Assembly: GCA_000708835.1 (NCBI GenBank)
Contig: DF237104.1
Coordinates: 1 to 64,000, forward strand
Source: Klebsormidium nitens
Lineage: Eukaryota > Plantae > Klebsormidiophyceae
DNA length: 64,000 nt
Reading direction: 5' to 3'
The notes beneath the pieces are model-generated. The model saw only the letters and a list, made by a program, of their open reading frames with translations. It was not told the origin of the DNA and did no database searches. This document shows, piece by piece, positions 1,493-63,493 of the stretch. Position 1 is the stretch's first letter. Each line of letters opens with the position of its first letter. Position numbers and translations under genes: made by a program.

Positions 1493-4400
1493 TCATCTTT
1501 GGTGCAAGAAATCGCACGTGTCGCCTTTCACGCAATACCCTTTCGCAAAGTACATGCACGCCCTGTTTTGCTTTGGCCGGTGCATACTGCCGGGTGGGCC
1601 CTGGGCCCCATACGGTCTCTCTGCGCGCTCTTCATAACCATCACGGGAAGACCCTCCAGCTGGGGGCTGCCCCCTATACTGCGGTGCGACATTTCCACCA
1701 GGACCAGTCTCTAAGTTTCTCCTCGGCGCTGCGTCGAACTGACCGCGAGTCACGTCGCCACGTGGCAGCGGGTTGCCCTTCCACCTGTCGCCCTCGTCCT
1801 GCGCCCTTGCAAAGTTCGCGGGCGGGCCGCGCCCGCCATTCGCCCGACCAAAGCTGCTTTGCACGCGGTCACCTTCCGATGGACGGGGCGCATAGTCTCT
1901 ACTAACGAAAGTGCTTTCGCTCGGTCCACGCACTTCTCCTTGGTAGCCTTGCACGCCTGAAGCAGTCTCGTTTGGCCGAGCCGAAGCACCATAACTAGGC
2001 TGAGGATTATTTCTTGGCCCACCCGGAGCAGGCTCCCAGCGTGACGTGCCTCCAAAGCGCGTCGCTTCAGGCCTCTCGTGGGACACGGGCGGCGTTGCGG
2101 TTCTTGCCGGCTCAGCCGGCGTTCGGCTCTGGAACGTTCCGCCGACCTGAGCGGCCGGAGCTTGAGATGGCGCAGGCTGGCTTGGTCGCCCTGCTTCGGT
2201 CGCCAAAATCGAGGTCAACAAAACGGCACTGGACTCGGGCCGGTTTTCCATCCAGACTTTGAGCTCCGACGGGAATGCGCCAGTCGCCTGCCACTTTTTC
2301 AACTGCGCGAGTGTGAACGGGCCCTGCTGGACGCCCTGCGGATCTCTGTAGTGCCACTTAGGATCCGGCGGAGGTACGTACGGCGGAACGGGAACGGCCG
2401 CCGGGGCGGGAGCCGCCGGCGGGAGCGCTGCGGGGATTGGGAGGGGCGCGATCGGGGGCGGTTGACCGGACCGGAACGGCGGACGTACCCCCGAGCGGTC
2501 TCCAAAGCCTCGATATCCAGCTGTGTCCGTGTGCAGCGGGGGCGTTCGAGTAGGCGGGGCGCCCTGCTGCTGCTGAGTCACTGCCGGCGGCGGCTCGAAG
2601 CTGCGCTGGGGCTCGAAAGTGCGCGGCGGGTCCAAAGCGCGTGGCGCGTCATACTTACCGTACTCGGGCCGGTTGCCCGACGGCCTATTGTCAAACGGCC
2701 CTGCAAAAGGCTGCCGGTTCTTGCTTGGGTCGCGCACATGCAACGCCCCTAGATCCATGGGGGGTCGGACGGGCGCTGCGAAAGTCGGCGGCGTCTGAAG
2801 CAACGGCAGGTCGCGAGCGTCTCTCACAACGCTCCTTCCGGGACCCTCCCTCGGGGGCGGCCCGCCCCGCCCCCCCCCTCCAGAAGGCGCCATGAATCCT
2901 GAACCCCGGCCCCCGTTTCCGGGAGGTCCCAAAAACCCGGGTCCAAACGGCGGCGTTCTCTCCTTCCGTTCGAACCCGTTCCCTGGGCGGTCGTTCGACG
3001 GGCCCCTCTCCCGGTCACGAGGCCTGTCCCCCCCAAACCGAGGCGAGATTCCCGGGCGTGAAGAGTCCCCCCCTCTTGGCGGAGGCTCGTCGAACCTACT
3101 GGCACGTGGCGGCCTCTCGTTGAACCGCTCCCCCCCGCCCCGCCTGTCCGGCCCCGACTCTTTCCGCCGATCATCGTCCCGGGGGGACACTATGTCCCGG
3201 TCTCTTGGGCCTCCCCGCCCTCCTTGGTACGGAGACCGCCGTCCCCGCTCCCGTTCCCTCTCCCGACTGCGTTCCCGGGATCGCTCCGGCGCCCGCTCGA
3301 TCGGCCGCCGCTTGTCGAGGCCAGAATCTGCTCCCTTTCTCCGGTCATCTTTTCCCGGGGGGTCGGAACCCCGGCCAGCGGGACCCCACCGGCTGGTGCG
3401 GTCGTCACGGCGATTGCGGGGGCTCTTGACCGGGGCCGCGGTCGCCTTCTTTTGCTCGGCGGCGCGCTGCTGGGCCTCTGTGGAAGAACAAGACTTGCGT
3501 CAGAGGGTATCTTTCTGCAACGCATCCGAATGTCAGCAGGAATGTGATGGAGCACAGGCTCTCTGTATCTCATTGCCTGCCCAGCAGGGATACCACTCAG
3601 TCGATAGCCCTTCGATCTTCCTGACTACTTCCGCTTTCACTGTCCGGCCGTTTTTGGCTTCCACGTCACGCTAAGCACAGCTGTGACGACGTAATTGCAA
3701 GTCCGACAAAGCTCCGACTCCCACTGACGCCCCAGAGAAGGCGACCAACATCCAACGAAGACTCTCCAGGACAATCCGCAAAAGCTGGCGCACCTTTCTC
3801 CTTCTTCTCCCGCTCCTCCGCCTCCGGATCGTACGGCACGGCAGGGTCCATCTTGGGATCGGCCTCGATGCCGAGCGGCGCGCTCAGGCGGCCGGCACGC
3901 GTTTCTGGCCGCTCTACTTCCTTGAGCTGCTCCACGATGCGCTTCAGCTCCTTCATCTCGCCCAGCTCGCTCGCACGGTCGCGCAGGTTGATCAGCTTCT
4001 GCTTCTCCGCCTCCATTGCCTGGAGGGATGAGCAAAATGAGGCATTCAGTTCTGGCGAAGAGAAAGTGCGAGATTTGTCATTTCTCCATGGCTATTGGGT
4101 CAGGGACAAGACTGTACGTGCTTGATTGCTAAACGGGTAAGCTGACTTTTCAAGAGTGGGATAATGAGAACCTTTGAACTAAGGATTATTTTGCATGTAA
4201 TCCAGGCTGAGCATGTCCCTGTGTAAAGCTATGAGTGAGCTTAAGGGACATTCAGAACCTCTACGTCGACGAGGTTTTCTTCACAGTGGAAACAGTTCCG
4301 ACACAGTGCTTCCGTAACGCAACAGGTCGTGTCCGCCCTGACGGACACCAGCTGGGAAACGAACGGTCAATCGTCTTGCCAGGATGAAAAAACTCTTAGC

Positions 4401-40846: not shown

Positions 40847-46344
<5,498 letters not shown>

Positions 46345-47930
46345 GGTCGACTTGGGTGATCCCCGAGTGCTGAGCAAAAACTTAGTTCGAGCACGAGACG
46401 GCGATGATCGTTGAGAGGTCATAAGTGATTTCCTAACAACCCGTAGATTGAGGTGCTGGTCGCTTTCGAGATCTTGGCGGCTGGAATAGAATCCTACCTT
46501 ATAACGTACAACCCAATTCTCATCACACTTGTATGAGGCTGTCCTGATTTACAAAGCATGCACGATCAGCTTGGCAACATGCATGTACTTCAATCATGAT
46601 GGAACCTGGAACCATGACACGTTTGAACGTAAATCGAATCAACTCTCAATTGCCTGGACATGCATGCCGCCCCTATAGCGAGCACTACTAATCAGACCTC
46701 AGCTAATTAAGGGGAATCCTAGTGTCTTGAGTCAGTCTTCATTATCTTACATGGTATGACATGCATGAGATTTACGGACTGATAGCTACAGTCTCTCATG
46801 TGCATGCTTCAGACAGTTACAGCATGTTCCGCTGAAGCTGATTCGATGGGAGATATAATGCGAGGCGCCTGCCCTGATCGAAAGCTGGCTCAGTGCTCCG
46901 ACGCACCGTCGCGGCATGCGGGTCGATAAACATGCAATCGACGCCGCACGTCATGGCAAAACTCGCTCCGTGGCTGCATGTTTAGCTGAACTTAGGACAA
47001 TCAACGCCATATTCTTCACCTACAATGAGCTTTCAAGCCGCGGCGGCATGCAGGTCGATCGGGAATGATCGCAGCTAGCTCTCGTACCACGGCCAGATTG
47101 AATCAGAGAGAGCGACGAGCATATGCGTGCGCAGACCAGCTATAGTAGAGGGGGGACCATGCTCTCTTTGATTTCACGAATGATGTCAAGGCCACGATCC
47201 TACGATCACAGTCGAATTCAGTGGAAGGGCTTCTGTAGCAAGTACAGATGCCATGAACCACTGTACTTACTCACTTGTTTATCCGTCAAACAAAAGTGGT
47301 TTACATACACTGCGCCAAAGTCCCAAAAGCTTTCAGTGTCCTTTGTTCGCAACTCAGTACGGGCCTAGCCTAACATTGACTCGCCCTGCGGACTCACGGG
47401 GGCGTCTTGACCCTTTTAAAGGCGCGCGCACTGCCATCACCCGCGACCTTGCCTCTGCCGACTAAGCTTGAGATGCACGTGGCAAGCTTCCTGATACTTC
47501 ACTGGTTCCGGCATAATACCTGAAGGACTGAAGGGGCGAAAACGGAACCTGTTTGCCTACGTTCTTACTCACAGCTGATTTTGGCAGATGCGGTCTTCGC
47601 TCCCTTCTAGATACTAAGTCACCGGCTGCATAGATCTCTTTGCAGCTTCTATTCAGTGGTCACAAAAGAAATATCAAACTCTCGTCGCGGATCCGCTCAC
47701 GCTTCTAGTTGAATTCACTAAGTATATCTCACGATTCTCTCAACTCCCGTGTCAAACTTGCTTTCTCCTCCTTCGGAAGGCTCGGCTAAATATCGACGTG
47801 CTATTACTTCTCGAAGAGCTCATTTCTTCGCGTGGTTGGGCCGCCGTTGTCGGAGTCAGCGCCGTCCGAACCCTCTGCACGACGCGTCGCAAAGCATCAG
47901 CCAGCATCAAGATAGAAGGCTGCGACTAAC

Positions 47931-50900
47931 TCAAGATGAGTGGTTACGACCCCGGAGATTGTAGGGACCTAAAATTCCTATACATTCAAAGAGACACAGA
48001 GGCTTGAAGCACCTTCAGGTGCACGGCTCAACCTCCATTCTGCTTCAAGCGAAGCTCCACCTCTGCAGAATCCTGGACTAGGCGCCAATTCGATGCGTAA
48101 GCAGAACTTTGTGTTCATAAAGTCCAAATCCTGCACATCCAGAATCCTCTGAAAGTCCCGGACCCTGACCCTCACCGTCCCCGTCATCCATGCCGAAGTT
48201 TTCTTCCTCCTCGCGTCCCTCGACTTCGTGAATCTAAAGATTCCAACTTCAGAAGTGGAGTCTTGGGATTCTTGCCAGACTTCGACACCCCAAATCTCCA
48301 AGATCCTGAAACCCCGGAAGTCAGAGACTCACCGTCTCCGTCATCCATGCCGTCATCTTCCTCGTCCTCACGTCCCTCCGGGATGACGCTCCGCGCGAGA
48401 CCGCCGGCGGCCAGATCGCTGTGAATGGCATCCAGCCGGCCGTGCAGCAGGTCCCCGATGTCGCGCATGCGCAGCTCCAGGTTGCGGACGGCGTCCTGTC
48501 CGGAAAGGGGGTAACATTTTGTCCCAAAAGCGGTCGAGTTCTGTCCGAAAAGCAGTAACGTTCTTTCCGGAAGGCAGAAACTTACTGTCCGGAAACAAGA
48601 TCGCGCTCTCACAAAAGCGAAAACGTCTTTCCGAAAGGCTAGAGGACTCTGTCCGAAAAGCAAGAGGAACTGTGTCCGAAAAGGAGTACTCTGTCCGCGA
48701 CGCAAAAACGTTATGTCCGAAAAGCAGGAACACTCTGTCGAAAAGCAGTAAGCTCCCTTCTGATGGACTTCGGACGCTGTTTGATGGCACTCTGCTCAAT
48801 TGTGTGACACCGTCCTCTTCGGAAAGCAGAACCATTCTGTCCGAAATGCAAAAAGAACTCCTGGGTGGACTATGGACGGTCGGTGACAAGTGCTACGTGC
48901 CAACCCGTTGTGAAGCTCACCTTGAGTTCCAAGAGCTCCGCGTTCTTTTTGGGCTTCTTGGGCTGCTTGAACTGCTTCTTCACGTGCTCGCCGTACTCGA
49001 CCAGGATCTGCTTCGCGATCCGCTCCGGCCGGTCCGCCGAGCCGTCGCGGTCCTGCAAAAAAGCGCGTGACGTCAGCGGTGCGGGGGTTTCGGAGTTGCT
49101 TCTCGGTACGTACCCGGGTCACGGCGCTTTCGCCTCTTCTGGTACGGCATTTATACGCAGTTGACAAGAGAGACTCTGGTCCTGGGGACCCTTAAAACGC
49201 AGGGGATGCTTTCGACGGGGTGCTGGAAGCGTCCAAACGCGGGCAGTACAGGGTTCTGACGAAATCCGGAAAGTCCGGACCTGATGTATTGCAAACTGGC
49301 GCTGCAACATGTTGTCCCTTCATTTTAAGGGCCCTAGCTAGATACCGACGACTCTCTTTGTCGACCGACCATGTGCCATCTCGTGCCTTTACTACGAATG
49401 GATACCGCACGGTCCGGTACGTACCATTTGTAGATACTCGAGACCAAATACCAGCCCACTTCATTATTCTTGATCGCCAACCTGTCGTGAAAAACGTGCC
49501 TCTATCTGGCCACCGGTCTAACCGGCTCCTGCGATGGACACTCGGCCGAAATCGACCAATCAATAGGGAGCCAGCTTTGACTTTCTCGACACTATATCAT
49601 TTCGAGAGGCGCACCTCGAACGGGTCCTGCGTGTAGGCACTGTACCCGGATTCGACCAATCAAATGCCATTCCGAACTCATACAACTCTGTAAAAAACGC
49701 ACCTCCATCTGGCAGCGCCTCTCGAAGATACTCTGCAGCGACTCGCCGTCGATGTTCTTGCCGTCCAGCTTCAGCACCAGCTCGCTCTCCTCCTCCGCCT
49801 CCTCCTCGTCGTGAGTGTCAAGCTCCTTACACTGCGAGCAGTCAGCGAAGAATTGACACCAGAGGAGCAAAAGGCCGTCGGGGCTTTCGTCCTGCTGGCT
49901 AGTTGAGATGGCCTTTGTTGTCCGGTGATGCAGCGAAAATGGATACGGACCACAAACGAAGTGTGGAACGGTACGAGGACGAACGTCCAAAAACGAATTG
50001 ATATCTGTACGGAAGGGACCAACATCCTTTTGATGGACTCTGCGCAAAACGAAAGAGGATATGCCATAAGGCAGGATGAGTAACATCGCCTTTTGAGGAC
50101 GTCCTGAATCAGTAGCTCCAAGCAGGAAACCTGCTAAAGTTCAACCGAAAGCTATGTGAAAGACGCGAAAGTTTTAAATTGAAACTCGACACGACGAAAA
50201 TTACCTCAAGGAGTTCCGGCTGCTGTGAACTCAGTCCACTCTGGCCAAGATGTTCGGAACAACTCGTACTGGTGCATCCAGTCGTTTGGTCACACGTTCG
50301 CAGGGATCGAGGGCGACCGCACAGGCGGTCCGCTCACCTTCGCGTCGCCGGCTTTGGTCGCGCCGCAGCGCGCCTTTCGCCGCCAGACCTTGAGCTGCTT
50401 GAGCAACTTCCTCTGCGAGAGCCGCTTGTTGACGACGGATTGGATGTACCAGTACGCGTACTCCGCGATTTCTTCCGGCATTGTGGGGGCGGTTTCGGTC
50501 TTCTCCTGCAGGCAGAATCAACCCCCCGAAAATTTTCAGTAGGCGGAAGCAAGCCCCCCAAAACGTTGAAGAATGTGGACCCAACCCCCCGGAATGCTTC
50601 ATTCAAACGATGCCTTATACGTTCGCGGGATAGTTACGACCTACATTGAGGGGTTTAGGGTTGTGTAAAAGTAAGGAAAGCCTCAGGGCGCCCTAGCAGT
50701 AAGGGCTGTACTGCAACCAGCGCACTACTATATTTTAGACTTGTTCCGAAAGATATGTAGATACTCCAATTGACAATGTGTGTTTGTTGAGGTCTCCGGT
50801 CCAATCTCGACCACAATATTGAGTCAGAAAACAGGTGAAGAGCCGGAGACATGTGGAAGAAGGCCGTTTGGTCGACTGCCGGAACCGCTTCTTGTAACGA

Positions 50901-53900
50901 GCGCAGCAGAGCGAAGCCGTGAGTGTCTTGCCCTCATTGTTTCCCGGTCAATGCCGTGTAGGTTCGAGAGGCGTACTGACCTTGACATCCACAAAGGCGT
51001 CGACTGCAATCGCAATCCTGCAAGATAAAAAGCAGTGTTTCAGGGCCTGCAGTAAAAGCCAACCGGTGATATAGGTAAGTGTGCCAGACTTGCCCTCAGG
51101 TTTCCCGAACGGATTGGCTCTGTCTCTGGGATTGCCTGCGTCGCGACCATGGATCCAAAAGCGGAAGAAGGGCAAATGTAACTGAAGGGTCCGGTTCTCA
51201 GTAAGTAACATGGATCGTTCGACAGCTTTTGTCGAGACGAGACAAATGAGGACAGCGCTTTGATGACGGTAGCTCTTAGGATGCTCCCATCGATATGCGA
51301 AAAGACCACAAGGTAGGGTGTGAATCACTCACAGGAAGTTCATAATGATGAAAACGATGAACCAGTTGAAGGTCCAGAAGAAGAATTGGCCGGCACCGAA
51401 CTCCCAACCTTGAAGCGTCATCAAGTTATATTCAAACTGCAATACAGAAGAGCTAGTGAGTCAGGATCGTTCTTCAGCACTTGTCGTTACCAATCAAGCA
51501 CTAGCGCTGAACTTGGCTGGATGCAGGGTAGACCGGAAGTGATCTACATTACATCTCCGGAAGGAGGACACGTGTGAAAGTCTTCTGAGAAGGAAGGGCA
51601 ATAAACCTGATTGCGGTATCTCGGAAATTTGCTTCCTGGCTCACTCGAAGATCGAAAAAGTGCTTCCATGGCTCACTCGAAGAGCGCAAAGTATATCGGT
51701 GGCAGCTAGAAAGGGCGACGACCTACCGATGTGTCTCCGAGGATCAAGAGGAAACAACTCGTGATGGACCACCCCAAGCTGCGGAACTGCGAGGGAAGAA
51801 ACGTGAAAGCTCAGGGACAAAATGTCGTTTTCCTCCTGAATAGGCCTCCAAAAGTCTTTGGCAATCTTGCGAAAGGAAGAGCAGAACGCACGGGGTTGGA
51901 GGCCATGTCAAATGACTGTTGGACTCACAAGCAGCCGCTTCCTGAGTCAGTGAAGGCATGAAAAGATCACGGAAACGAAGTACGCAGACGGAATATATGC
52001 AGGAAGGGCGGTCCAGCCTGCTTTTCCACTCAGGAAAGAGTTTGCAGGCCAAAAGCGAACGATTCCGGTTTTCCTCAGATCCGTCACGTTCTAGGCGCAC
52101 GACACCTTTCAGAAGCAGTGGATGCCTTTAGTCAGTCGCTTCTGACGAAGTCGGTCCTCTTCTCCGAGCTTATGAAAACCCTCCAGTTATCTCAATCAAA
52201 GATTTTTTACGAGCTCTTTGTAGCAATACTCCTTGCCGAAAAACACGTCGTTTCTCGAAAACAATTCGCCCACAGAGCAGATTCAGATCTCTGACACCCA
52301 TTGTTGATTCCAATGCGGCTAGGAGAATTTAGGATAGGATGTGAGGCGACGGGCGGGCGCTCACGAAGTCGACGGAGCGTCCGAAGACGATGTGGCCCAT
52401 GAAGGAGTAGCCCAGGAAGACGATGGTCCACAGGATGAAGAAGTTGAGGATGTCGGGGCCCGCCTCCACCAGCGTCCGCGTCAGAACGCCCATGCGCGGC
52501 TGGAAGTGCATGTGCTTCAGGATGCGCAGGATCATGAAGAAGATGCTGCGAGAAAATGAAGAAAGAGATTGTTTTATGGCTCCGTTGACAATGAAAAGGG
52601 AGTTTGGGAGTTTGAGAATAGGTGGGTATGTGCTTCAAAGTGCGCAGAATCATGAAGAAGATGCTGCAGGAAAGCGGGGCAAGAGCTTGTTTCACGGTTC
52701 TGTTGACACATTAAAAAGGACTGTTGAGTTTGAGAACAGGCATTCGCTCTTCTGCGCATGATCATGAAGACGATACTGCTGCGGGGGTGGGAGGACAGCT
52801 GTTATAGGGCGTGATTGGTTTAGCCTCTCCTGTTTTAAATCAGATAATGACATGTGCAAACCTCAGGATGTGCGGCTTACAAGAGATAATGTGTGGAACA
52901 GGGAGAGGGCTTTATGCTCGGCTCCGTTGAAAGCAAAACAGAAAGGTTTGGAGGTCAAGAATGGGTGGGAAATATGCTTCAGGATGGCGCAATGAAGAAG
53001 GTGCTGCGCGCGGGAGCAAGGAAAGCGCTCATCTGACGGCTCGAAAGGATGGCAACAATTTCCAGTCAGCATGGCGCTCACTTGATCCCGTTGATGCCCG
53101 CGTACACGGCGTCATACGAGATGAGGTAGTGGACCTTCTCGAGGAGGTGCGTGAAGTCGTGCAGCTCGGAGCCGTCCTTCTTGAGCTGGAAGAAGCGCGC
53201 CGGCTGCGTCAGGCTCTCGTAGATCTCGTAGCGCGCGCGCGCGTGGAACGTGGGCGCCAAATATGCCACGAAGACGATCCTGCGAAGGTGGATTGTAGAT
53301 TAGATGACGTCAAATGGCCTCTGATTATAGTATTAATATGGAAAGAGATGCAGCTCAGGCGGTCGTAGACCTCGTAGCGCCCGTTTGCGTGGGATGTCGG
53401 CGCCAGATATGCGAAGAAGGGGACTCTGTGAGGGCGGAAGGGATGCGGAAGTTTCGTTGAGAAAGAAAAGAAGAGCGGAAACGTTGGCGGTTGAAGTTGG
53501 CAAAGGGCTGTTCAGATGATCACATTCTACCGCGAGGCCCGCAGAACGATGTGCCGGAACTCAGAAGGCTGTTTGTTGGGGAGAACAGCGCGTAGTTAAA
53601 GGGAAAGTCGCACAAAAGAGAAGGACTGGTTCTACGATGATGGCAGAAAACGGAGGAAGTACCACGCATGCCGGCGTAAAGAAGGCGAGAGACTGGAAGA
53701 AGGGCAAATTATCCGCGCTCGAAACTCTGAAAGGGGTTTCAGATTGTTGCGAACAGCACTCCGTGGCACTACTTCACACTGATGTTGGACCGGCTGCTCG
53801 CAGAAGTTGCTGAGGTCATCCCTTGTTTTGCTCCTTCATCAAAAATCGTCGCAGAAATTGCAAGGCACCGCAGGAAGTTGCTGACAAGTAGCAATACTAA

Positions 53901-56900
53901 TCCGAATGAAGTCAACGGATGTCCTCTCCAAAAGAACGCAAAGATACTCATGGGCGCACAACCAGCGCAGGCTTCCGACAAGCTCGTCAGCCGCGCGACA
54001 ACAAATCCTCCGAATCGTGAAGATGCAAGACGGCAGTCAAGCGCGGAAAGACAAGCCTCACCTCATAACGACGGCCGTCACGAGCAGCGTGAGCGACGCG
54101 AGGTCGATGTAGTTCCATGCCTGCGCGAAGTAGGGCCAGAAGGTGCCCTTCTTCCGCCGGATCGAGATCGCTTCCGCGATCTCCTTGTAGGCCCCGAAAA
54201 AGATGGAGCACGCCACGATGATCTCCAAACACGCCAGCAAGTAGTCAATCGGCCGCCGGTAGGGCTGCACGTCAGTAGTATCGTTTTTCGGTTAGAATAC
54301 GGCGCATTTGAGATACATGGTTTACTGCCAGGGGGATGGGTGAGGTTAATCTAGGGGTTTAGGGTACTGGGTGCGGATAAGGAGCGGGTGGGTTTGTTTC
54401 CAGATTTTTGGTTTAGTGCGTCGTCCCGGTTTCCGTTTTGCATCTCAACCCGGTTTCTCCTTTGTACCTCAACCTGGCTCATGAACCCGACCTGAACTCC
54501 AAAACTGACCTGCACGTCCACCGCGTTGATGTTGGTGTTGACCGCGATCTTGCCCGCGCGCTGGAAGGTCAGCCGGACCTCCGTGCTCACGAAGAAGTGG
54601 CTCTCGCCTGGAAGAGGGGACGGAGTGAGAAGGGGTCCAAGGTCTTGTTATCGCGAGAGGCGGGGAACCAATACGAAGGGAGATTTTAGGATCAGCGGCT
54701 CTTGCCTGTTGGGGTGCAGGTAAAATCAGGGGGAAGACCACATGCGATGAATCTTTTGGGGGAGTGGAAGGCAGATGAGGATTGCACATTTCTGGACAAT
54801 ATGTCAAACACAGAGAAGCATCTTTTTGGACCTTGCTCTGCTTGAATCTTGCTTGGAAGAAAGCTGAGAAGTACTTCTCATGATACTAGCGCCTGCGGCT
54901 GAAGCAGAGAGCATGAATGACCCACTGGAAAAGAGGGTCGGCGCAATGAATGCTGGTTTGCGTGACAGATCGTATCGCATCGGGGCATACCTCTTTCACA
55001 GATACCACCGATATATTTGGGCAAGAGACGGTTGGGCGGTAGGCAGCGGTGCCACGACGATAGCTACGCGTCGGGACTTCGTCCAGGGAGCAGAACGCTC
55101 GAGTGTACTTCCGAATGAGCGACAAAGGTATAAGTCGGCGGATTTTCAAGCTACTACAGGGACTGAAATTTATGGTACAGTAGTGTGCCAGCTCACCGTT
55201 GTACGTGACCAAGTGCAGCAGTAGGCTGTCGGTAGCGTTGTCCAGGAACAGCCCGTCGGCCAGCGTTTGCAACCGGGCCTGCGCCCCGGCCTGGTCTAAG
55301 TTGATGTCGAAGACTATAGGGAAGCCCGGGTCGCCCTTCCCCGAGTCCTCGCTGTAAAAGCCCATGGGGACCCCGAGGAATGTGATCTCTTCCGGGGAGT
55401 AATAGTCACCGATGTTGGCGACCTGGTCCGGGTTGAACAGAGATGACGTCGGCACGAAGACGGGGTCCACGCCGAAGGGCGCGATGGACTCTCCGTCGAT
55501 GCAGTACTGGAAGAGGCTCAGGAATCTGCGTCGGGACAAGGGAGTGGGGACAGTGGGTACGGGTCAGGCAGTTTCAGAGAATGTATAATACTGGTGGAAG
55601 TAACCAACTGGGGCCCGAAGGGGCTCGAAACAGATTAAAGGGGCGGTGGGGGTCCAGGCAGGGATGAGCAGCACGCAGAGAAGCAAGTGTGAAGGTGGGG
55701 CCTCTTCGAGCAACTCAAACAGGTGCGGAGTCTGTGACAACGGAAGAAAAGCAGGTACGGCAGGGTCAGAGCGAAACAAGGGAAAAATTTGATTACAAGC
55801 CAGTGAGGGGCTTACCGTTTGTCTTTGCAAAGCTCTCCTCCGTATCTCTTCTGCCTCATGTACAGGCCCCCAATAATTCTGCAGAAAGATTCAGAGCACA
55901 TTTCATGCAAGTGAATCAGGACGCGATCGCTAATAAGACGAACTGCGAGATTGTCGATCAAGCCTTCGTTGAGCGTGAAAGAAACAGGACCCTTGCGTTC
56001 AGGGAAAGAAGCTGCAAACTATTTCGTACCTGTTGTGATTGGTCGCGTAGCGGGTCCTTGTGCAGTTGCTGGGGTCGAAAAGGGACTCCTGGTTGTTCAC
56101 AATCACCACTTCAAAGGTCGCACGGTAATCCTGGCCGATCGGTTCTGCTTGGCAGCACGCTGCAGAATATGAAAGAGGCAATTTCGATCGCGCAATCTGA
56201 AGGAGAGGAGAGGATAGAAGAAACGAAGTCTTTCCACAAACCCGTGAAGGACTAATTTGGATCCTCGGGGATGCTTCAATCGGATAGACTGCGCTACAAA
56301 AGTATCACGGTAAAGGTGGCGAATATACGATCTTGACCTATCAATTATGGTCAAGATCGGGAAAATCCAGGATCAAAAGAAGATGGAAAATAGAATTAAT
56401 TGGAAACAAGGTAAGGTGGGTCGCTTTAAGGCAACACCTTGAGACGGCATGAGCCTTGCAGCGTCAGAGTTTTGTGAAACTTTTGCCGTATCCCTTTCGA
56501 TACTAATCAGAAACTCGCTTACGAGCACGTCAGCAAAGACTCTACAGGCTGACAAGGCAGACGTACCGCCGTCGTCGCTCCTGATCTGTCCCGGGGGGCA
56601 CTTGCACAGGTTGTTGGTTCCGCTTCCGCCGGAGGTGGTCGCCAGCACGGTCGCCGGATCCGGGCAGGAGCAGTCCCCGCCGTCGAAAGCGCACTCCACG
56701 GAATTGCAGCCGAAGCTGGCGCCGCAGCGACCGTTGGCCAGCAAGCGGATGGGACACCCGGGCGCGCACTCGCGCTGGTCCTCAGTTGTCACCGTTTCTG
56801 CGCGCCAACGTCTTCTGAATCGTGACTGTCGTTCGCAAATCATATTTTCCTGTTCAATCGCTCAGCTCCCAACACAAATCCTCTCAAATACTGCATTTGC

Positions 56901-59900
56901 TTATCAGAGATTATCACAGAAGTATATACTCGGAAAGCCATTGGAGAAGAAGCTTGCAGCCATGCCAGTGGAAGTCGCTAGAAGCAGCGCAGATCGGTCT
57001 TGGATCCAGACACACAGGCGCCGCTGAGCATGGATTGACATCAGTCGCCCTTACTTTCCATGACAAGACCTGTTGTATCACCAAACAATTTGTTCAAGAT
57101 ATGAGCCCTGTAGGCAAAGGGAGAGTCTCCAAGGGACAAAAGCACTACCATTTGCATCTTGCAAATGTCGGACAGACGATTGGCACGGAAGATCGAAACA
57201 AAAGCTGTGGTCGAATAAGTTTTGCGCCTCTGCAAGGAAGGAGCTACTCACGAGGAAGGCCTTTGTCCTTGGGCGACACGTACACTGTCCCAGTCATCGA
57301 TGATCCAAAGCGGGAGTCCAGGTATTCGTATACACCAGGCTGAGTGAATACTTGTGTGAAAGAGAAGGCTGATGTTGCGGTTTGAGCTGCAAAAAAAACA
57401 GTTCGTGAGTCTGGTGCTCAAATAGAGCAAATGATCTCCACTTCGAGGTTGGCGAATCCTCAGCCTAATCTTCAAATTCATAGCTGAAAGTCAGTGAAGC
57501 AACTTGAAGAAAGGTCCGCTGCAGGTTTCCACGACGAGAGTCCGCCAATCGAAACCTGGTAATGAAGAATACCGAAGCCAATTTGATCTCATGCTGAGGA
57601 GCGGCTGCTTGACGTCAGACTATTCGCAGGCGAAAGCGGAACAACAGGTCCATTCACCAAGTTGCGTAAAGCACCGCAAAAAGCAACCGACAAACCCCTG
57701 TATCTTTTCAAGAAGGAGAAGATATTATCGAGGCTGTCGGTGGCTCTCACTCTAGCATTTGATTGATCCAAACCGAGCTGCTTCTGACCATACAAACTGT
57801 CAAGCGCAGGTTGAACAAGCTGTCCACCAAAAGCCCCTTCTGGGATCGTAACATAGGTTTCGTCCAGATACCTTCGAGTCCTCACCTGCTTTGAGAACGT
57901 TATCGGACCGAACGACACATGGCACAGGGTCCGTTAAGAAGCTGCCATTTTCCCCAGCTCCAACGTTTTCGGGGCTGCATAAGCTGCCAGTCGAGATGAC
58001 TCGCCGGCCAGTTCCGAATCCGTTGAAGATGTCAGCGGAATCTTGCATGTTTTGGCCTGCAGAAGCGGAGGCTCTCGTGAGCGACCAAATCCGCAGCGTT
58101 CAAGACATAAGCTGTTGAAACAGCTTGCGAGTGGTCTTTTACAATCGAAAAAGGTTCCGGACAAAGCGCAACCGTCAGCCTTAACAAACCTTTCCTAGAT
58201 GGATCTTATGTCAGCCAAGCAATCTGGCAATTAAGGTGGATCTGATTGTCGAAGCAAACGCTAGTCTAGAATGCTTTAAAGCACGCAGGACTATAAGGCC
58301 TGGACGTCCCTTTTAAATGCAACCTGAAAGCAGATCAACCTTGCAGCAACTAAACAAGGATCTAGATCTGGCCTGCATACCTGCAGTTGAAGACGAAGGA
58401 TAGGCATATAGCTTGCCTTTGACAGCGTGTGGAAAGTCATCCGCCCAGACAAACTGGATGGAGTCTCCCGCGGTGATATTTGTGACGTAGTGCACGTCCA
58501 GCTTCCACGGAAGCACAACGTTGACTGCGAGTACAGATGATATGAATATTGCTGCCCTCAGTTTAGGTGCTTCCGTGCTTCGAAGGAGAACAGAATAAAT
58601 TGCGAGGGGCTAGGGTTTCAGCGACTTGCGCATGCAGCAGATCCTCGCAGCCGTTCATTCAGCCGCTAAGAAGCATCAGAAACGTTGTTGCTGCTAAAAG
58701 GATCAGCTTAGTACACATGGACGGGTTGAGTCTGCAGGTGTAACAAGGCCGTAAAATGAGCCCCGTGCGAGGTCGACTCGAAAACGCCGGTCAGAGATGC
58801 AGTCCCAGTGTTCATCAACCCAGCACTGGCACCCTACATCCAATCTGGTATGCAGTCTAAAGCTTGTTCTCAACCACCAGGATAGACCATGCAATTCGGA
58901 CCTCCAGTGCGCCCAAGCTGGCACGCGCTCACCGAGATTGCAGTTGTTGACTTCCTGCTGAACAACCTGAGCGTCCGTGTCGTGCAGGTGATTGCCAACA
59001 TTGACGAGGTCCGCGTCGCTGAGCGTGAAACCGATGGTTTCGTAGAGCGCGTTTTCTAGGATAGTGATGAAGCGATTCTGCTCTGGCTGGGAGATGTTGT
59101 ACGGACTGCCTGCGCCATACTTTCTCTCCAGAACAGCCTGCACAAGTTCGAAAAACTCTGAGCAGAGAGAAAGGGCCTAGGTAAAAGATCAGGAAGTGGC
59201 ACGCTTTGGCCAGGTTCTCAATCCAAGATCGTCAAGTTCCCAGCCCATTCAATTCACCGATATCTCAACCGCAATCAGGCTTGTCCAGGTGAAATCGATT
59301 CTGCCAGTCCAGTTGGGACTTCACCAGGGATTCTCAGGCCGCTGAGGCTGTGAGAATACACAGCGCGGACGATTCTGAAAAGTGTTGTTAAGAGGTTCTC
59401 ATTTTACTCTTGAACAAGAAGTAAAGGCATTTGGATTATCAAGCTCAAGCAGACAATGATCTAAGCTTAACTGATCTCACAAAGACCCGGGGGAAAGCTT
59501 GAAATGCAGAGATAATCTTATGCTTTCTTGGAAACGAGCAAGCTAGGTGAGTACACGATCCTCACATGCAGAGCGTCCACGTCAGCAGACGTCAGCGTCG
59601 TGCTGGTCGTCGCGTCCGTGTAGGAGCACCCCGGCAGCGTAGCAGGGCCCCCAAAATAAGCACAGAAGAAGCCGAGCATCTTAGGCCCCGTTGTGGTTGG
59701 GGGCATATAATACTTAGCCAGGCAGGAGTCGATGATCCAAGTGTTGAGGGCTCTCGACACGGCCGTGGCCAGATTGCGAAAGCGTTGGACGTCCGTGTTC
59801 CCAAACTGCTGCCAGTAGAGCTCGGTTCCGGTTCCGGCCTGGGAGAGGCGCCGGCCGGAAGACGCGAGGCGGCGACGCCCTCCTGTGAGGTCGGAGCCCT

Positions 59901-62900
59901 TGACGGGTGCTTGTGCGCGCGCGGTGAGAGTAGCCGCCTGGTCAGGGTGTTCGGACACGTAGATGGGGTCGACTGCAGGCGAAAGGAATCAACAGAACGC
60001 ATGCTACTCTTTGTTCTGAGTATGATCCAGGGTGTTTTCAGGTTCACAGCAACGCTGATCTAATGTAAAGACTTGGATTTAGGATTAAGCAGATTGTTGA
60101 GGTTTAAGCTTCTCGCTGCAGGAAAGTTTCTATCATACTGGTCCATACCTTCTGAGTCGCCTTTTCTGAGAGACAGAGTCGTCTATTTTCAGCTGCGGAG
60201 GTCACGCACCGAACGTGCAAGATAAAGATTTGCCCCTTTTTGTAAAGTCGCTTCTAGTCAGGCAAATCCGACTCAAGGGATAAGGCCAAAGCAGGACAGC
60301 CATTATACATAGCGCCGATTCTCAGAAGAGGGATCATCCAACTTCAATCTGCCTGATAGCTAGGGTAAAGCAAAAGTGTTTCGTGATCCATTCGAGTGGC
60401 GAGTCCGCATCGAAAGATCGGAATCTTGTGCACTCAGGAACGGAATTGCACCATTCATGAGGAGTCGGTGGCCAAAACTTACGGGTGCAGACCCTGCCGC
60501 TGGCCGTGAAAAAGGAGTCGTGCTTGCTACTGTTGGCAAGGGACACAATCTGAATAGAAACGCGCACGGGGCTTTTGTCACGCTTTCACACGGCAATACA
60601 GTGGTAGGAGCTAGGGCACATGAGCAATTTTGCAAAGCCTTGTCCGAATGCAGCCGCACTGGATGAAAGCCCGAAAGCGAAGGCACTTGGGATGCATCTA
60701 ACCCAGGAGAATATCGTACAGCCTACAACTTAGGAAAGGAACATATCAAGTGCGTAAGCAGATCTTGATGAAACTGCATGATGCCTTGTATAACGACACG
60801 AAGACGCGAGTTGACAAGAATCTGATGTATCCACCGACTAAACAGCTACAACGACAGGTTTTTGGAAGACCCGATGCTTCGTAGTAGGGATGCGGTGCGG
60901 AAAGGAGGCGCCCTCGACAACTAGGGGCGTATACGTAACCAACATCGCAAAGGGTTAAAGGGAGGGTTCAGACGTCGCGCTTCTCACTTGGAGACAGTTC
61001 AGGTTCTGGTAAGGGTCCAAGGCCGTGACATTCGCATTGCAAAGCCCAATGCAGTCGACGAAGAGGCCGGCCAAGGTGCGGTCGTTGACGTTCGAACAGG
61101 CGTCCACAGCACATCCGACGCTCTTTGCGCAGATCTGCGGTCGGAAGCAGGAGACGGACTGAGGAAGCGTTCGCGGGGGAACTCGGAATAGGACGTCTTT
61201 TAGCTCTGAGGTTGGACTAGCACATTCGAAGGCTCGATCTGAGGACGTACATAACCGCTTTGCGCTGAAAACGCTCATGGAGGCGCAAGGACGAAGACAT
61301 TCAAAAGTTGGATATACAAATCGCCGACGACTTGCACTCGGAGCCCCACAGACCACGGGTCGCCCCCACGCTCCCGCCCGCTTCATGCCGAGCGCCCATG
61401 AAGTGCAGAAACCATCCTGTAATTATTCCACGAAAGGAGCCAAGCAAGACAGGTGAAGAAAGCCTAGCCGGGCACAAAAGGTAGACAATCAGCTCACCGA
61501 GCGGCAGCGGACCAGATCCGACTCCGCGTCCGGCTTGCAGGTGCCCCAGCTCGACAGTTTGATGTCTTCAGCCGCGCCCAAAGGATCTACAATCTGTGTG
61601 GTCGCCTTTCCTGACACACCGTCACCGGGGGACGTCAGGCGGACCTCCCAGGTGCCGTTGGGGAGGTTCAAGGTCGTCTCGTACGCGCCCGACTGGTCGG
61701 CAAACCTCTGATTGGTGTCAAACCTGCAGGGTTGGATATCCGGAGTGAACATCTGCGTTCTAATCGTCTCTGGTTGGAACAATGGTCGTCGCTTTCAACC
61801 AGAATCACGTTCCTAATGGCGGGGGTGTGCAGAGGGGGGAGCGGGGAGAAGCAGGCATGCGCACTGGTTCTTGTTGAAGTGGGCCTCGGTGTGAGTCCTT
61901 CTTTGCAGCTTCTTAGGTACGCTCCGCAACAGCAGGATGTACTTCAAGAAACGAGTTCGTCCTCGCACTTGGATCAGGCCCCCGGGATAGGCCGCTTCTT
62001 GGCGTGCTTTCAAACACGTTGACCGCCCTTCGAACACTGCAAACGGTCATCCCCTGCAAAGCCCGTCTTCCCTCGAATATCTCTGTCAAGGGGAAAAGCA
62101 TTATCGAAGGGGCAAATACTCATCACGTGCTCGACCAGAATGCACGCAAAAACAGCTTGTTTCCCCCTCTTAAGGGTCCAAAAACTGTATGCCGACGTTA
62201 CAAGACAAGCTGGGACTTCAACCAGCTTCGTCGCCCTAACATAAACCGGATCGTTTTGTATGCAAGCCAACTCACCAGCACAGATTGTCCGGATACGTCA
62301 TGCACACGTTCCATTCCGCGTCGGCCTGATCCTGCGCGGTCTTGAAGTCGGTCTCAAACGAGACCGCTACCGGGACTGTGTCCATTGCCCCGCAGTCGGG
62401 GGTACACCCAAAGCGCCCAAATCCGTTGAACTCGATGGGGCGGTCGCAGACTCCATCGCCGCACACTGGGTCCGCCCAGATGGTATTCACAAACGTATCG
62501 TTGATGTACGCGTAAATGTCGTTGGCGTACGTGAAGCTGCTGCCCTGAAAATAAAGAAGAGGGGAAATGTCACTTAAGCTACAGCACCCACGGTTGACAA
62601 GCACAGTAGCAAAATTTAAGAGAGCAGTCTCAGCAATGTCCAACCATGGGGGAAAATGTCCTCAGCTACAGCCCCCATGGTTAGTCCTGCAGTCTCTTCC
62701 ACAAAAAGCACGCAATACAAAAAAGCGGCCCAGTCATTCACAGGTCTTTATCATCATCACTGGATTGATGGAGCTCGAATAAAACATCCCGAACCCATCC
62801 GAAACATTGACACCTTCCAATGGCAAAAACATTTATCACTACCCGGAAGCCATGGCATTAACAGTTCTAACAGAAGGATCCTCGGGCCCCTTGACCTCGC

Positions 62901-63493
62901 ACCCAAGATGTCGTTTTTGACAGAGACTTCGGTAGCTTCCACAAAGGCGAAGAGAGTGGTATATCGTCGACTTCTGCAAACTTCGCACCTAATGACTTGC
63001 AGAGTGGCAGTGCAACATCTTGGGTGCGAGTTTAAGGTGCCCGAGGTGTGATTTTAGAGTACAAGCTGTGAACTGTTTGAAACACAAACAAGCGTGGCTC
63101 CAGCGCACCTCTGGCAGAATTGCAGAGTTGGCCGTGGTCAGCTGGTACACGAGCGCACTGTTCTGCTGCATGTACAGGACAGTCATGTACAGGCCCGTAA
63201 AGATAAGGAACGACAGCAGGTTGCAGTATTGCGTCTGCCGGTACTTGGTCTCCTTGATGATGTCATAGACGCGGGAGACAATTGTGCGATCCTGTCTGCG
63301 AGCACAAAGGAGGGAGACTCAATCGGGGCTGGTTAGCCAAAATAGAGAAGCATGATAAGAAGCTTGAATTGGGTCAGAGGGGGAGTGGCCTTGTGGACTG
63401 TTTCTGAAATATTCGACCTTCAAACGCCCATGCAGTAGCGAGAATTACTCACCCTCCACAAAGGGTCTGGTAGGGTGCACTGGCCTGCGGCAT
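47931..63493 (-). CDS. PKD2: Polycystin-2 / PKD2-type TRPP cation channel with a very large extracellular S1-S2 loop (Chlamydomonas PKD2-like). Exons approx. 63493?-63453, 63295-63109, 62544-62276, 61723-61498, 61134-60988, 60549-60483, 59972-59566, 59137-58933, 58524-58417, 58056-57886, 57386-57252, 56797-56567, 56159-56030, 55878-55816, 55525-55197, 54607-54510, 54264-54062, 53279-53082, 52545-52365, 51786-51727, 51436-51333, 51017-50981, 50505-50338, 49831-49703, 49052-48921, 48495-48333, about 47982?-47931
   Basis: S1 (NLLSFLIFTGLYMTVLYMQ), WADPVCGDGVCDRPIEFNGFGRFGCTPDCG, TOP-domain motifs (NRIIGGLYMRQKR...C; LADGLFLDNATDSLLLHLVTYN), S2-S3 (FAQAWNYIDLASL), S4-S5 (MILRILKHMHFQPRMGVLTRTL...DILNFFILWTIVFLGYSFMGHIVFG), pore (SITSCFLLILGD), S6 (FFWTFNWFIVFIIMNFLIAIAVDAFVDVK) and a C-terminal coiled coil. 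Internal joins are phase-consistent; the first and last exons are uncertain. Confidence 0.9.
48140..48332 (-). repeat. Decayed downstream copy of the 3' end and donor of PKD2 exon 48495-48333
   Basis: True GGCATGGATGACGGAGACG|gtgagt versus copy GGCATGGATGACGGGGACG|gtgagg ending at 48176 (157 bp spacing). The intron starts are also similar. Confidence 0.85.
48496..48850 (-). repeat. Array of about 10 short units resembling the 3' splice site (TTTCGGACAG)
   Basis: + strand (c)tgtccgaaa(a) variants recur roughly every 20-45 bp upstream of the true acceptor tttccggacag|GAC. Confidence 0.8.
51630..51692. repeat. 31-bp imperfect tandem duplication in PKD2 intron
   Basis: tgcttcctggctcactcgaagatcgaaaaag followed by tgcttccatggctcactcgaagagcgcaaag. 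Confidence 0.78.
52546..53040 (-). repeat. About 114-bp array of 3-4 decayed copies of the acceptor and 5' end of PKD2 S4 exon 52545-52365
   Basis: cag|CATCTTCTTCATGATCCTGCGC (true, 52545) is echoed at 52663, 52775, about 52890 (very degenerate) and 53003. A ggctccgttga-like motif recurs in the units. Confidence 0.88.
53350..53440 (-). repeat. Decayed upstream copy of the acceptor and 5' end of PKD2 exon 53279-53082
   Basis: The copy from 53425 translates VPFFAYLAPTSHANGRYEVYDRLS versus true IVFVAYLAPTFHARARYEIYESLT. Confidence 0.85.

Follow-up and report, generated by a model that had tools for sequence, protein, structure and literature searches.

Is the extracellular loop of an algal PKD2-type channel a cleavable, force-sensitive device of flagellated cells? 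The question is raised by a locus of Klebsormidium nitens on contig DF237104.1 (assembly GCA_000708835.1), of which positions 1 to 64,000 were analysed; this whole stretch of 64,000 nucleotides is referred to as the window. A first-pass annotation, made from the letters alone, had described a PKD2 channel gene whose loop combines Cys-rich segments, RRRL/GRRL motifs, a cupredoxin-like module and a Notch-type LNR repeat. It had read the product as a possibly mechanically gated sensor of zoospores. These building blocks are all present: the minus-strand region 55816-62544 carries 12 in-frame exons which encode the loop between transmembrane helices S1 and S2 of a PKD2/TRPP channel gene. Within this loop of about 880 residues, the first helix and the beta core of the usual TOP domain are separated by an inserted cassette of about 800 residues. 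From the N-terminal side, the cassette comprises a cysteine knot with a beta-sandwich, a Cys-rich helical module, the linker with RRRL and GRRL, a globin-like domain which the earlier description did not contain, a cupredoxin-like domain, and the LNR repeat with a Cys-rich tail. This cassette is a family trait of a clade of streptophyte-algal channels and no peculiarity of this genome.

The gene is predicted to encode a PKD2/TRPP-type cation channel, as the first-pass annotation had proposed. The exon at 52329-52535 matches PKD_channel (PF08016) with an E-value (E) of 1.1e-10 and 41.7 bits against a cut-off of 22.4, and Ion_trans is likewise matched in the channel part of the gene; homologues score 82-96 bits for PKD_channel. 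Besides Ion_trans, the Pfam matches of single exons are LNR, PKD_channel and a weak Polycystin_dom. The latter reaches E 0.03 in exon EM alone (open reading frame (ORF) 54886-55539; exons EA to EM are listed in Table 1), and EM is 48-50% identical to the part of the homologues P0004 and P0164 that passes the Polycystin_dom cut-off (29.6 bits). Searches used single exons or database homologues as queries. With P0004, P0164 and P0006 as tblastn queries, the gene is colinear from S1 to a C-terminal piece at about position 50374, spanning at least 13 kilobases, and a six-helix architecture with a pore loop is predicted.

The channel gene is expressed and spliced. Between 12 and 28% of the words of 55500-61499 are found in public runs, the level expected for spliced RNA, and RNA contigs from four runs of three studies (X1, X2, X5, and X7) were placed on this stretch. 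They define nine splice joints, eight of which read CT..AC on the plus strand and hence GT..AG on the minus strand, while the ninth corresponds to a GC-AG intron after allowing for a two-base ambiguity. At a tenth junction (EB-EC), a loose contig end at 61135 runs into the 3' end of EB. For the S1-EA and EA-EB junctions, both beyond the stretch covered by RNA, the evidence is frame, splice signals and homology; splice phases are mutually consistent throughout the refined exons EA to EM. The GC-AG intron occupies 58057-58416 with the donor AAAG/GCAAGC (the slash marks the splice site), on which contigs from all four runs agree. Unspliced contigs lie within introns at 58611-58868, 59943-60355 and 60520-61017 at a depth of 2-5, as opposed to 10-36 for spliced ones, which may represent pre-mRNA or retained introns.

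The proposal that all of these exons are spliced into the channel mRNA therefore stands for the nine RNA joints and the loose end, whereas 56059-56756 is uncovered. The RNA covers just the first 42 nucleotides of the LNR exon EJ, joined to EI in four runs, and just the last 30 nucleotides of EK, joined to EL. Contigs flanking the gap match with at least 99% identity and stop exactly at 56756 and 56059 in every run. The gap could stem from a strain difference, an assembly problem or silent filtering of contigs.

The predicted EJ-EK junction is nevertheless well supported, because it is in frame with GT-AG borders, continues the family motif, coincides with exon-confined similarity to a related alga, and joins exons with a low ratio of nonsynonymous to synonymous substitution (dN/dS). 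Across the junction the window reads ..DDG/xCCQ.. (the slash marks the junction), matching the family consensus DDGxCC. The related alga is represented by the genomic contig L002, which is about 85% identical to the window in nucleotides. Similarity to it is mostly restricted to the predicted exons, with an overrun of 60-70 nucleotides past the EJ donor and the EK acceptor and one additional short intronic match. Conservation in this comparison peaks in the LNR exon (88% amino-acid identity). Values of dN/dS against L002 are 0.13-0.14 for EI, EJ and EK (0.13 for the cupredoxin exon EI and 0.14 for the LNR exon EJ) compared with 0.10 for the TOP core, indicating purifying selection on the exons of the cupredoxin and the LNR and on EK.

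The two exons following the linker, the 3' part of EE and EF, encode a truncated-haemoglobin-like domain, as judged from a fold model of a homologue. Residues 118-600 of P0004 were folded with an alignment of 11 relatives and the window exons (mean predicted local distance difference test (pLDDT) 72.8). The model contains the TOP helix, a low-confidence cysteine knot, the beta-sandwich (pLDDT 83-87), the helical module, a disordered stretch (model residues 282-334, pLDDT <50) and a helical domain (model residues 338-472, pLDDT about 90). In Foldseek, the top 40 matches of this last domain are truncated (2-on-2) haemoglobins with TM-scores by target of 0.7-0.82. VIA-align of P0004 residues 449-596 yields Z scores of 15.5-14 and a root-mean-square deviation (rmsd) of 1.7 A over 114 of the 116 residues of the Paramecium truncated haemoglobin 1dlw; this score exceeds the level that the tool states for chance helical matches, and the whole chain is covered. 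The same protein is the best sequence match of the family profile in the PDB (E 0.003), via an AF(L/F)C..LGGP motif. The Pfam family Bac_globin (PF01152) reaches at most 19.1 bits, short of its cut-off of 21; such sub-threshold matches occur in 4 of 13 members and in none of the window exons. The window's domain, which runs from about residue 47 of EE through EF, is recognised by profiles built without the window's own rows (E 2.7e-28 for EE and 1.7e-10 for EF).

A globin fold raises what is the most interesting minority reading of the locus, a haem-based sensor channel. Here, haem b would be held by a conserved His, surface O2, NO, CO or redox state would gate the pore, and the conformational change would pass through the adjacent plastocyanin-like and LNR modules to the TRPP pore. 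This reading draws on the full-length match to the truncated-haemoglobin fold, on an F8-equivalent His present in 11 of 11 aligned homologues and aligned with the proximal His of the holothurian haemoglobin 1hlb, and on a Tyr or Phe at a B10-like place in RAL(Y/F). In the window's protein, however, the His is displaced by five residues towards the N-terminus compared with the 11 relatives, and the F-helix stretch fails to align to the family profile, which renders haem ligation doubtful there. At the positions which we take to be the distal E7 and E11 by hand alignment, P0004 and the window also appear to differ from 1dlw. Bac_globin stays below its Pfam cut-off, the metal site is clearly gone from the adjacent cupredoxin, a haem sensor would be unusual in an oxidising ectodomain rich in disulfides, and globin folds without haem are known (PMC8717448). 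A haem-gated channel is consequently considered unlikely, and it appears quite improbable that the domain still binds haem.

For exons EG, EH and EI, modelling of the homologue confirms the cupredoxin-like module proposed earlier and specifies it as a plastocyanin-type fold. Residues 596-800 of P0004 were folded with an alignment of the module from 16 relatives, to which EG, EH, EI and EJ of the window were added as separate rows. In the PDB, Foldseek ranks copper proteins of the cupredoxin fold at the top for the P0004 model (prob 1.0); they account for all 38 matches with E <=0.001 and comprise amicyanin, plastocyanin, multicopper oxidases and nitrite reductases. VIA-align superimposes it on plastocyanin with Z 9.1 and an rmsd of 2.2 A over 87 of 99 residues. 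At the sequence level, the module profile matches amicyanin and plastocyanin at E 1.5e-4, with VGD.ItWvW.D..PHS placed over VGDTVTWINREAMPHN and PGtYkYed...lMtGtVtV over AGTYDYHCTPHPFMRGKVVV, so that the PH(S/N) and M.G.V.V motifs are aligned. The window's EG, EH and EI match the profile with E between 1e-12 and 1e-15, and Copper-bind is sub-threshold in 3 of 13 members. Two of the four type-1 copper ligands, the first His and the Met, are retained; other residues stand in place of the Cys and the second His, both in the window and in every relative. Type-1 copper binding is excluded because of these replacements, and a functional blue-copper site was rejected as a candidate function.

The LNR repeat of the first-pass annotation passes the Pfam cut-off in ORF 56373-56843 (PF00066; E 9.5e-7, 29.6 bits against 21.2). 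Its cysteines are spaced C-x3-C-x9-C-x5-C-x4-C-x6-C, with NG and FDGGDC. Among the positions that presumably ligate Ca2+, DGGDC is retained, and the position following the third Cys, variable among relatives, is occupied by Gly in the window and by Asp in L002. LNR also exceeds the cut-off in P0004, P0006, P0020 and P0036. In the protein atlas, LNR clusters are the sole matches, all with scores <0.9, and a word search with the LNR exon gave no match.

On this repeat rested the idea of a Notch-like shield, in which the LNR would hide a protease site until it is pulled, making the channel a force-triggered, cleavable sensor of zoospore flagella. In its favour, the LNR is genuine and under purifying selection, Chlamydomonas PKD2 is cleaved in its loop and tied to mastigonemes (PMC2064795, PMC7265326), and Klebsormidiophyceae produce zoospores (PMC11341676). 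The negative regulatory region of Notch shares with the window the LNR family PF00066, its six Cys and DGGDC. It consists of three LNRs and an HD domain, whereas the window has a single LNR, with Gly after the third Cys (Asp in L002), and no HD, NOD/NODP or other HD-type family in Pfam. Furthermore, the sole basic motifs lie about 330 residues upstream, across two folded domains, in a linker which is predicted to be disordered in the homologue and hence exposed. In Chlamydomonas, PKD2 is cut in the cell body ahead of its entry into the cilia, and the cut is not triggered by pulling (PMC2064795, PMC10846610). An LNR is absent from the Chlamydomonas-type relative, and algae without flagella keep the cassette. 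The analogy to the Notch negative regulatory region was ruled out on account of the single LNR, the missing domains and the exposed, distant motifs, and a force-triggered shield is regarded as highly improbable.

The motifs noted in the first-pass annotation, GGRRRLASSGRRL, were located in exon EE. They sit 11 to 21 residues ahead of the globin-like domain in a variable linker, the equivalent of which is predicted to be disordered in P0004 (pLDDT <50). Similar motifs recur in the linkers of relatives, namely QRRL and RRRKL in P0004, ARRL and HRRKL in P0164, RRKLL and RRMTL in P0020, GRRLL in P0005, RRKVL in P0006, RRKAL in P0165 and RKRL in P0012, although outside the motif the linkers cannot be aligned with each other. 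RR-type motifs number 11 per 1,771 linker residues as opposed to 7 per 7,904 in the rest of the ectodomain, an enrichment of about 7-fold. In shuffled linkers, the probability of a motif is 0.004-0.39 per sequence (0.011-0.26 for the motif-carrying sequences). In plants, RRXL is the site of the Golgi enzyme SBT6.1/S1P (PMC11371470), and Chlamydomonas PKD2 is cut within its loop, in the cell body and by an unknown mechanism, with the halves remaining associated (PMC2064795, PMC10846610). Because of this fit and this precedent, proteolytic processing at RR-x-L may reasonably be inferred by analogy.

Alternatively, the crown could be passive, consisting of cofactor-free spacers which enlarge or stabilise the TOP domain or aid folding and trafficking, with no sensing and with RR-x-L left uncleaved. 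The loss of the copper ligands, the uncertain haem ligation in the window and the relatives that have no RR-x-L motif would agree with such a role. Against it, the dN/dS of 0.13-0.14 is as low as that of the TOP core, the order of the modules is kept across Klebsormidium, Mesotaenium and Closterium, and the motif is enriched in linkers that are otherwise unalignable. A purely passive crown is thus rather unlikely.

The distribution of the cassette was traced with a phmmer search of the TOP exon against 1.84 billion representatives, which returned 301 matches. Loop exons EA, EB, EC, EE, EG, EH, EI, EJ and EM are colinear in full-length relatives, including P0004 and P0164 from Logan assemblies, P0020 (a Trinity transcript in EukProt), P0005 and P0006 of Mesotaenium endlicherianum, and many Closterium proteins. 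P0004 is a single uninterrupted ORF of 4,518 nucleotides on a transcript contig of 5,065 nucleotides, so that the whole architecture stands on one mRNA in at least one organism. The 301 relatives do not include the full-length protein of the window itself, the best match being a fragment of 172 residues with 87% identity; nor is it one of the six relatives found by a word search with P0004.

According to local profiles, the TOP helix, cysteine knot and beta-sandwich are universal in the subfamily, Edaphochlamys included, and EA matches a profile built without the window's rows at E 3.2e-40. Chlorokybus, several Mesostigma paralogues, Pyramimonas and the labyrinthulid Hondaea also have LNR-like modules, located 100-150 residues upstream of the TOP core. 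The N2 helical, globin-like and cupredoxin-like modules are limited to Klebsormidium, Mesotaenium, Closterium, P0004, P0164 and P0020. The Chlamydomonas-type PKD2 of Edaphochlamys (P0139) has no LNR by Pfam and no cupredoxin-like, globin-like or N2 module by profiles. In a quick IQ-TREE analysis of the TOP-plus-channel part, the cassette-bearing proteins form one clade (SH-aLRT 100). The 70 rows of this tree exclude the window itself, isoforms, cluster-mates and proteins in which <380 residues follow the TOP start. The novelty claimed for the architecture thus holds with respect to Edaphochlamys and does not extend to the streptophyte-algal clade, where it is general. In Mesotaenium P0006 the knot module is duplicated. 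P0156, a Trinity isoform of P0020 with 1,057 residues, contains S1 and the whole crown and ends before the channel helices, reminiscent of the single-pass SIP partner of Chlamydomonas PKD2.

Klebsormidiophyceae do form zoospores, but Zygnematophyceae have neither flagellated stages nor basal bodies (PMC11341676). A reading confined to zoospores is weakened because the flagella-less Mesotaenium and Closterium retain the cassette, and spliced RNA of the Klebsormidium gene occurs in ordinary runs from three studies.

Comparison with known systems delimits what is shared and what is particular to this clade. Animal polycystin-2 (PKD2/TRPP2) has the same S1-TOP-S2 layout with PKD_channel and Polycystin_dom and the same succession of first helix and beta core, while its loop comprises about 200 residues (PMC2064795) with no inserted cassette and no known processing. 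Chlamydomonas PKD2, judged from its Edaphochlamys relative, shares the TOP helix, the knot and beta-sandwich module and the TOP core; this orthologue falls in another clade of the tree and is without the LNR, cupredoxin-like, globin-like and N2 modules. Group I truncated haemoglobins such as 1dlw and the Chlamydomonas THBs share the 2-on-2 fold, AFLC..LGGP and, in the relatives, the His at the F8 place. The window's domain differs in being embedded in an extracellular, disulfide-bearing channel loop and in carrying an insert of 15-20 residues with two conserved Cys after GGP. Plastocyanin, amicyanin and copper-less phytocyanin-like proteins have in common with the loop module the cupredoxin fold over the whole plastocyanin chain; in contrast to plastocyanin and amicyanin, the module has its copper Cys and second His replaced and contains a long, loop-rich insert (EH). 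Plant S1P/SBT6.1 substrates such as RALF23 and pectin methylesterases likewise present a dibasic RRXL between two folded parts of a secretory protein (PMC11371470), whereas here the protein is a polytopic channel and the cleavage putative.

Taken together, we favour as on balance probable a processed TRPP channel with an extracellular crown, acting mainly at the plasma membrane. The protein would be synthesised as a precursor, and a subtilisin-type convertase, S1P/SBT6.1-like or kexin-like, would cut the RR-x-L site or sites of the exposed linker in the secretory pathway. The S1-bearing half and the channel half would then stay together, as in Chlamydomonas PKD2. The disulfide-rich and glycosylated crown, with its globin-like, plastocyanin-like and Ca-stabilised LNR modules, would sit atop the TOP domain and couple gating to something that happens outside the cell, for instance the binding of a small ligand or of a partner from the wall or matrix. 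The 820 translated residues of the loop hold 35 Cys, in line with the Cys-rich segments noted at first, and 9 N-glycosylation sequons. The plasma membrane is proposed as the main site since the cassette is retained by Zygnematophyceae, which have no flagella; in Klebsormidium zoospores the channel might additionally act in cilia.

Several points weigh against this proposal. Cleavage, cofactor, partner and localisation are all inferred, and channel activity in the algal members of the clade is a prediction from sequence. Both fold models derive from the homologue P0004, which is 24-50% identical to the window exons, and the model of the cupredoxin region has a mean pLDDT of 59, with 77-83 in the sandwich strands and a poorly modelled LNR portion. 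Several Closterium paralogues have no RR-x-L in their linker. Finally, 56059-56756 attracts zero contigs in all four runs.

Table 1. Parts of the channel gene in the window, in transcript order; boundaries marked approximate come from tblastn.
Feature	Coordinates	Strand	Content	Evidence or remark
S1 exon	63109..63295	-	transmembrane helix S1 (LLSFLIFTGLYMTVLYM)	phase 0 end, predicted join to EA; tblastn with P0004/P0164/P0006, splice signals
EA	62276..62544	-	first TOP helix (DIYAYINDTFVNTIW), CGDGVC..DCG cysteine knot, start of beta-sandwich	
EB	61498..61723	-	remainder of beta-sandwich	loose contig end at 61135
EC	60988..61134	-	Cys-rich helical module	RNA joints
ED	60483..60549	-	start of variable linker (67 nucleotides)	RNA joints either side
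EE	59566..59972	-	linker motifs and start of globin-like domain	RNA joints
RR-x-L pair in linker (EE)	59845..59877	-	GGRRRLASSGRRL	candidate subtilase (S1P/kexin-type) processing site
EE, 3' part	59566..59832	-	N-terminal two thirds of truncated-haemoglobin-like domain (W..FG.TD..R, RAL., GFFCAYFGGP)	
Candidate proximal His	59566-59568	-	last codon of EE	
EF	58933..59137	-	C-terminal third of globin-like domain (G and H helices)	RNA joints
EG	58417..58524	-	opening strands of plastocyanin-like cupredoxin (ITAGDSIQFVWADDFPHAV)	GC donor
EH	57886..58056	-	middle, loop-rich part of cupredoxin	RNA, alignment and profile
EI	57252..57386	-	C-terminal cupredoxin strands (FTQPGVYEYLDSRFGSSMTGTVYV)	copper Cys and second His replaced
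EJ	56567..56797	-	LNR exon; remainder a small Cys-rich tail	
LNR repeat proper (EJ)	56670..56768	-	CAPGCPIRLLANGRCGASFGCNSVECAFDGGDC	Pfam PF00066
EK	56030..56159	-	CC..YRATFEVVIVNN.., return to TOP domain	acceptor predicted from frame, AG and homology
EL	55816..55878	-	IIGGLYMRQKR.., first TOP beta strand	RNA joints either side
EM	55197..55525	-	core of TOP (polycystin) domain	RNA joint; weak Polycystin_dom
End of TOP	~54492-54608	-		tblastn with P0004/P0164/P0006; approximate
S2-S3	54064-54270	-		tblastn; approximate
Further channel exon piece	53084-53248	-		tblastn; approximate
S4-S5	52368-52547	-		tblastn; PKD_channel; approximate
Pore and S6	51323-51433	-		tblastn; approximate
C-terminal piece	50374-50508	-		tblastn; approximate

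The channel part of the gene also displays local tandem duplications at the 5' ends of exons, pairing 52510-52590 with 52628-52708 and 53209-53292 with 53355-53438 at identities of 80% and 76%. One of them is a second, broken copy of the start of S4 (SIFFMILR.LKH), and both may be decayed exon duplicates or alternative exons. L002 contains three tandem copies of the TOP-end exon (3491-3575, 3734-3818 and 3961-4065; window 54530-54619) with 89-93% identity to the window, a pattern that points to exons duplicated in tandem, or to mutually exclusive ones, in the species of L002. Plus-strand ORF translations at 44700-46350 (..EAIAFQVR..), downstream of the channel gene, resemble glycerol-kinase (FGGY) exons by eye. 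Rfam gave no match in the window.

To our knowledge, algal PKD2 has been known solely as a ciliary protein of Chlamydomonas. Automated Pfam annotation already labels the LNR on database relatives, and a literature search found no paper that describes any of the three module types, LNR, globin or cupredoxin, for PKD2-type channels of algae. Both the globin-like and the plastocyanin-like module score below the Pfam cut-offs and would probably escape routine annotation. Land plants are held to have no TRP channels (PMC12806904, PMC7312350). A distinct PKD2-like clade that combines a haemoglobin fold, a plastocyanin fold and an LNR persists in the flagella-less sisters of land plants, and this persistence in Zygnematophyceae separates the channel type from cilia. 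The linker motif supplies a specific candidate position for the cutting of algal PKD2-type loops, which has so far lacked an explanation. With Closterium and Klebsormidium both culturable, the family would provide a testable case of metalloprotein folds recruited to a channel ectodomain.

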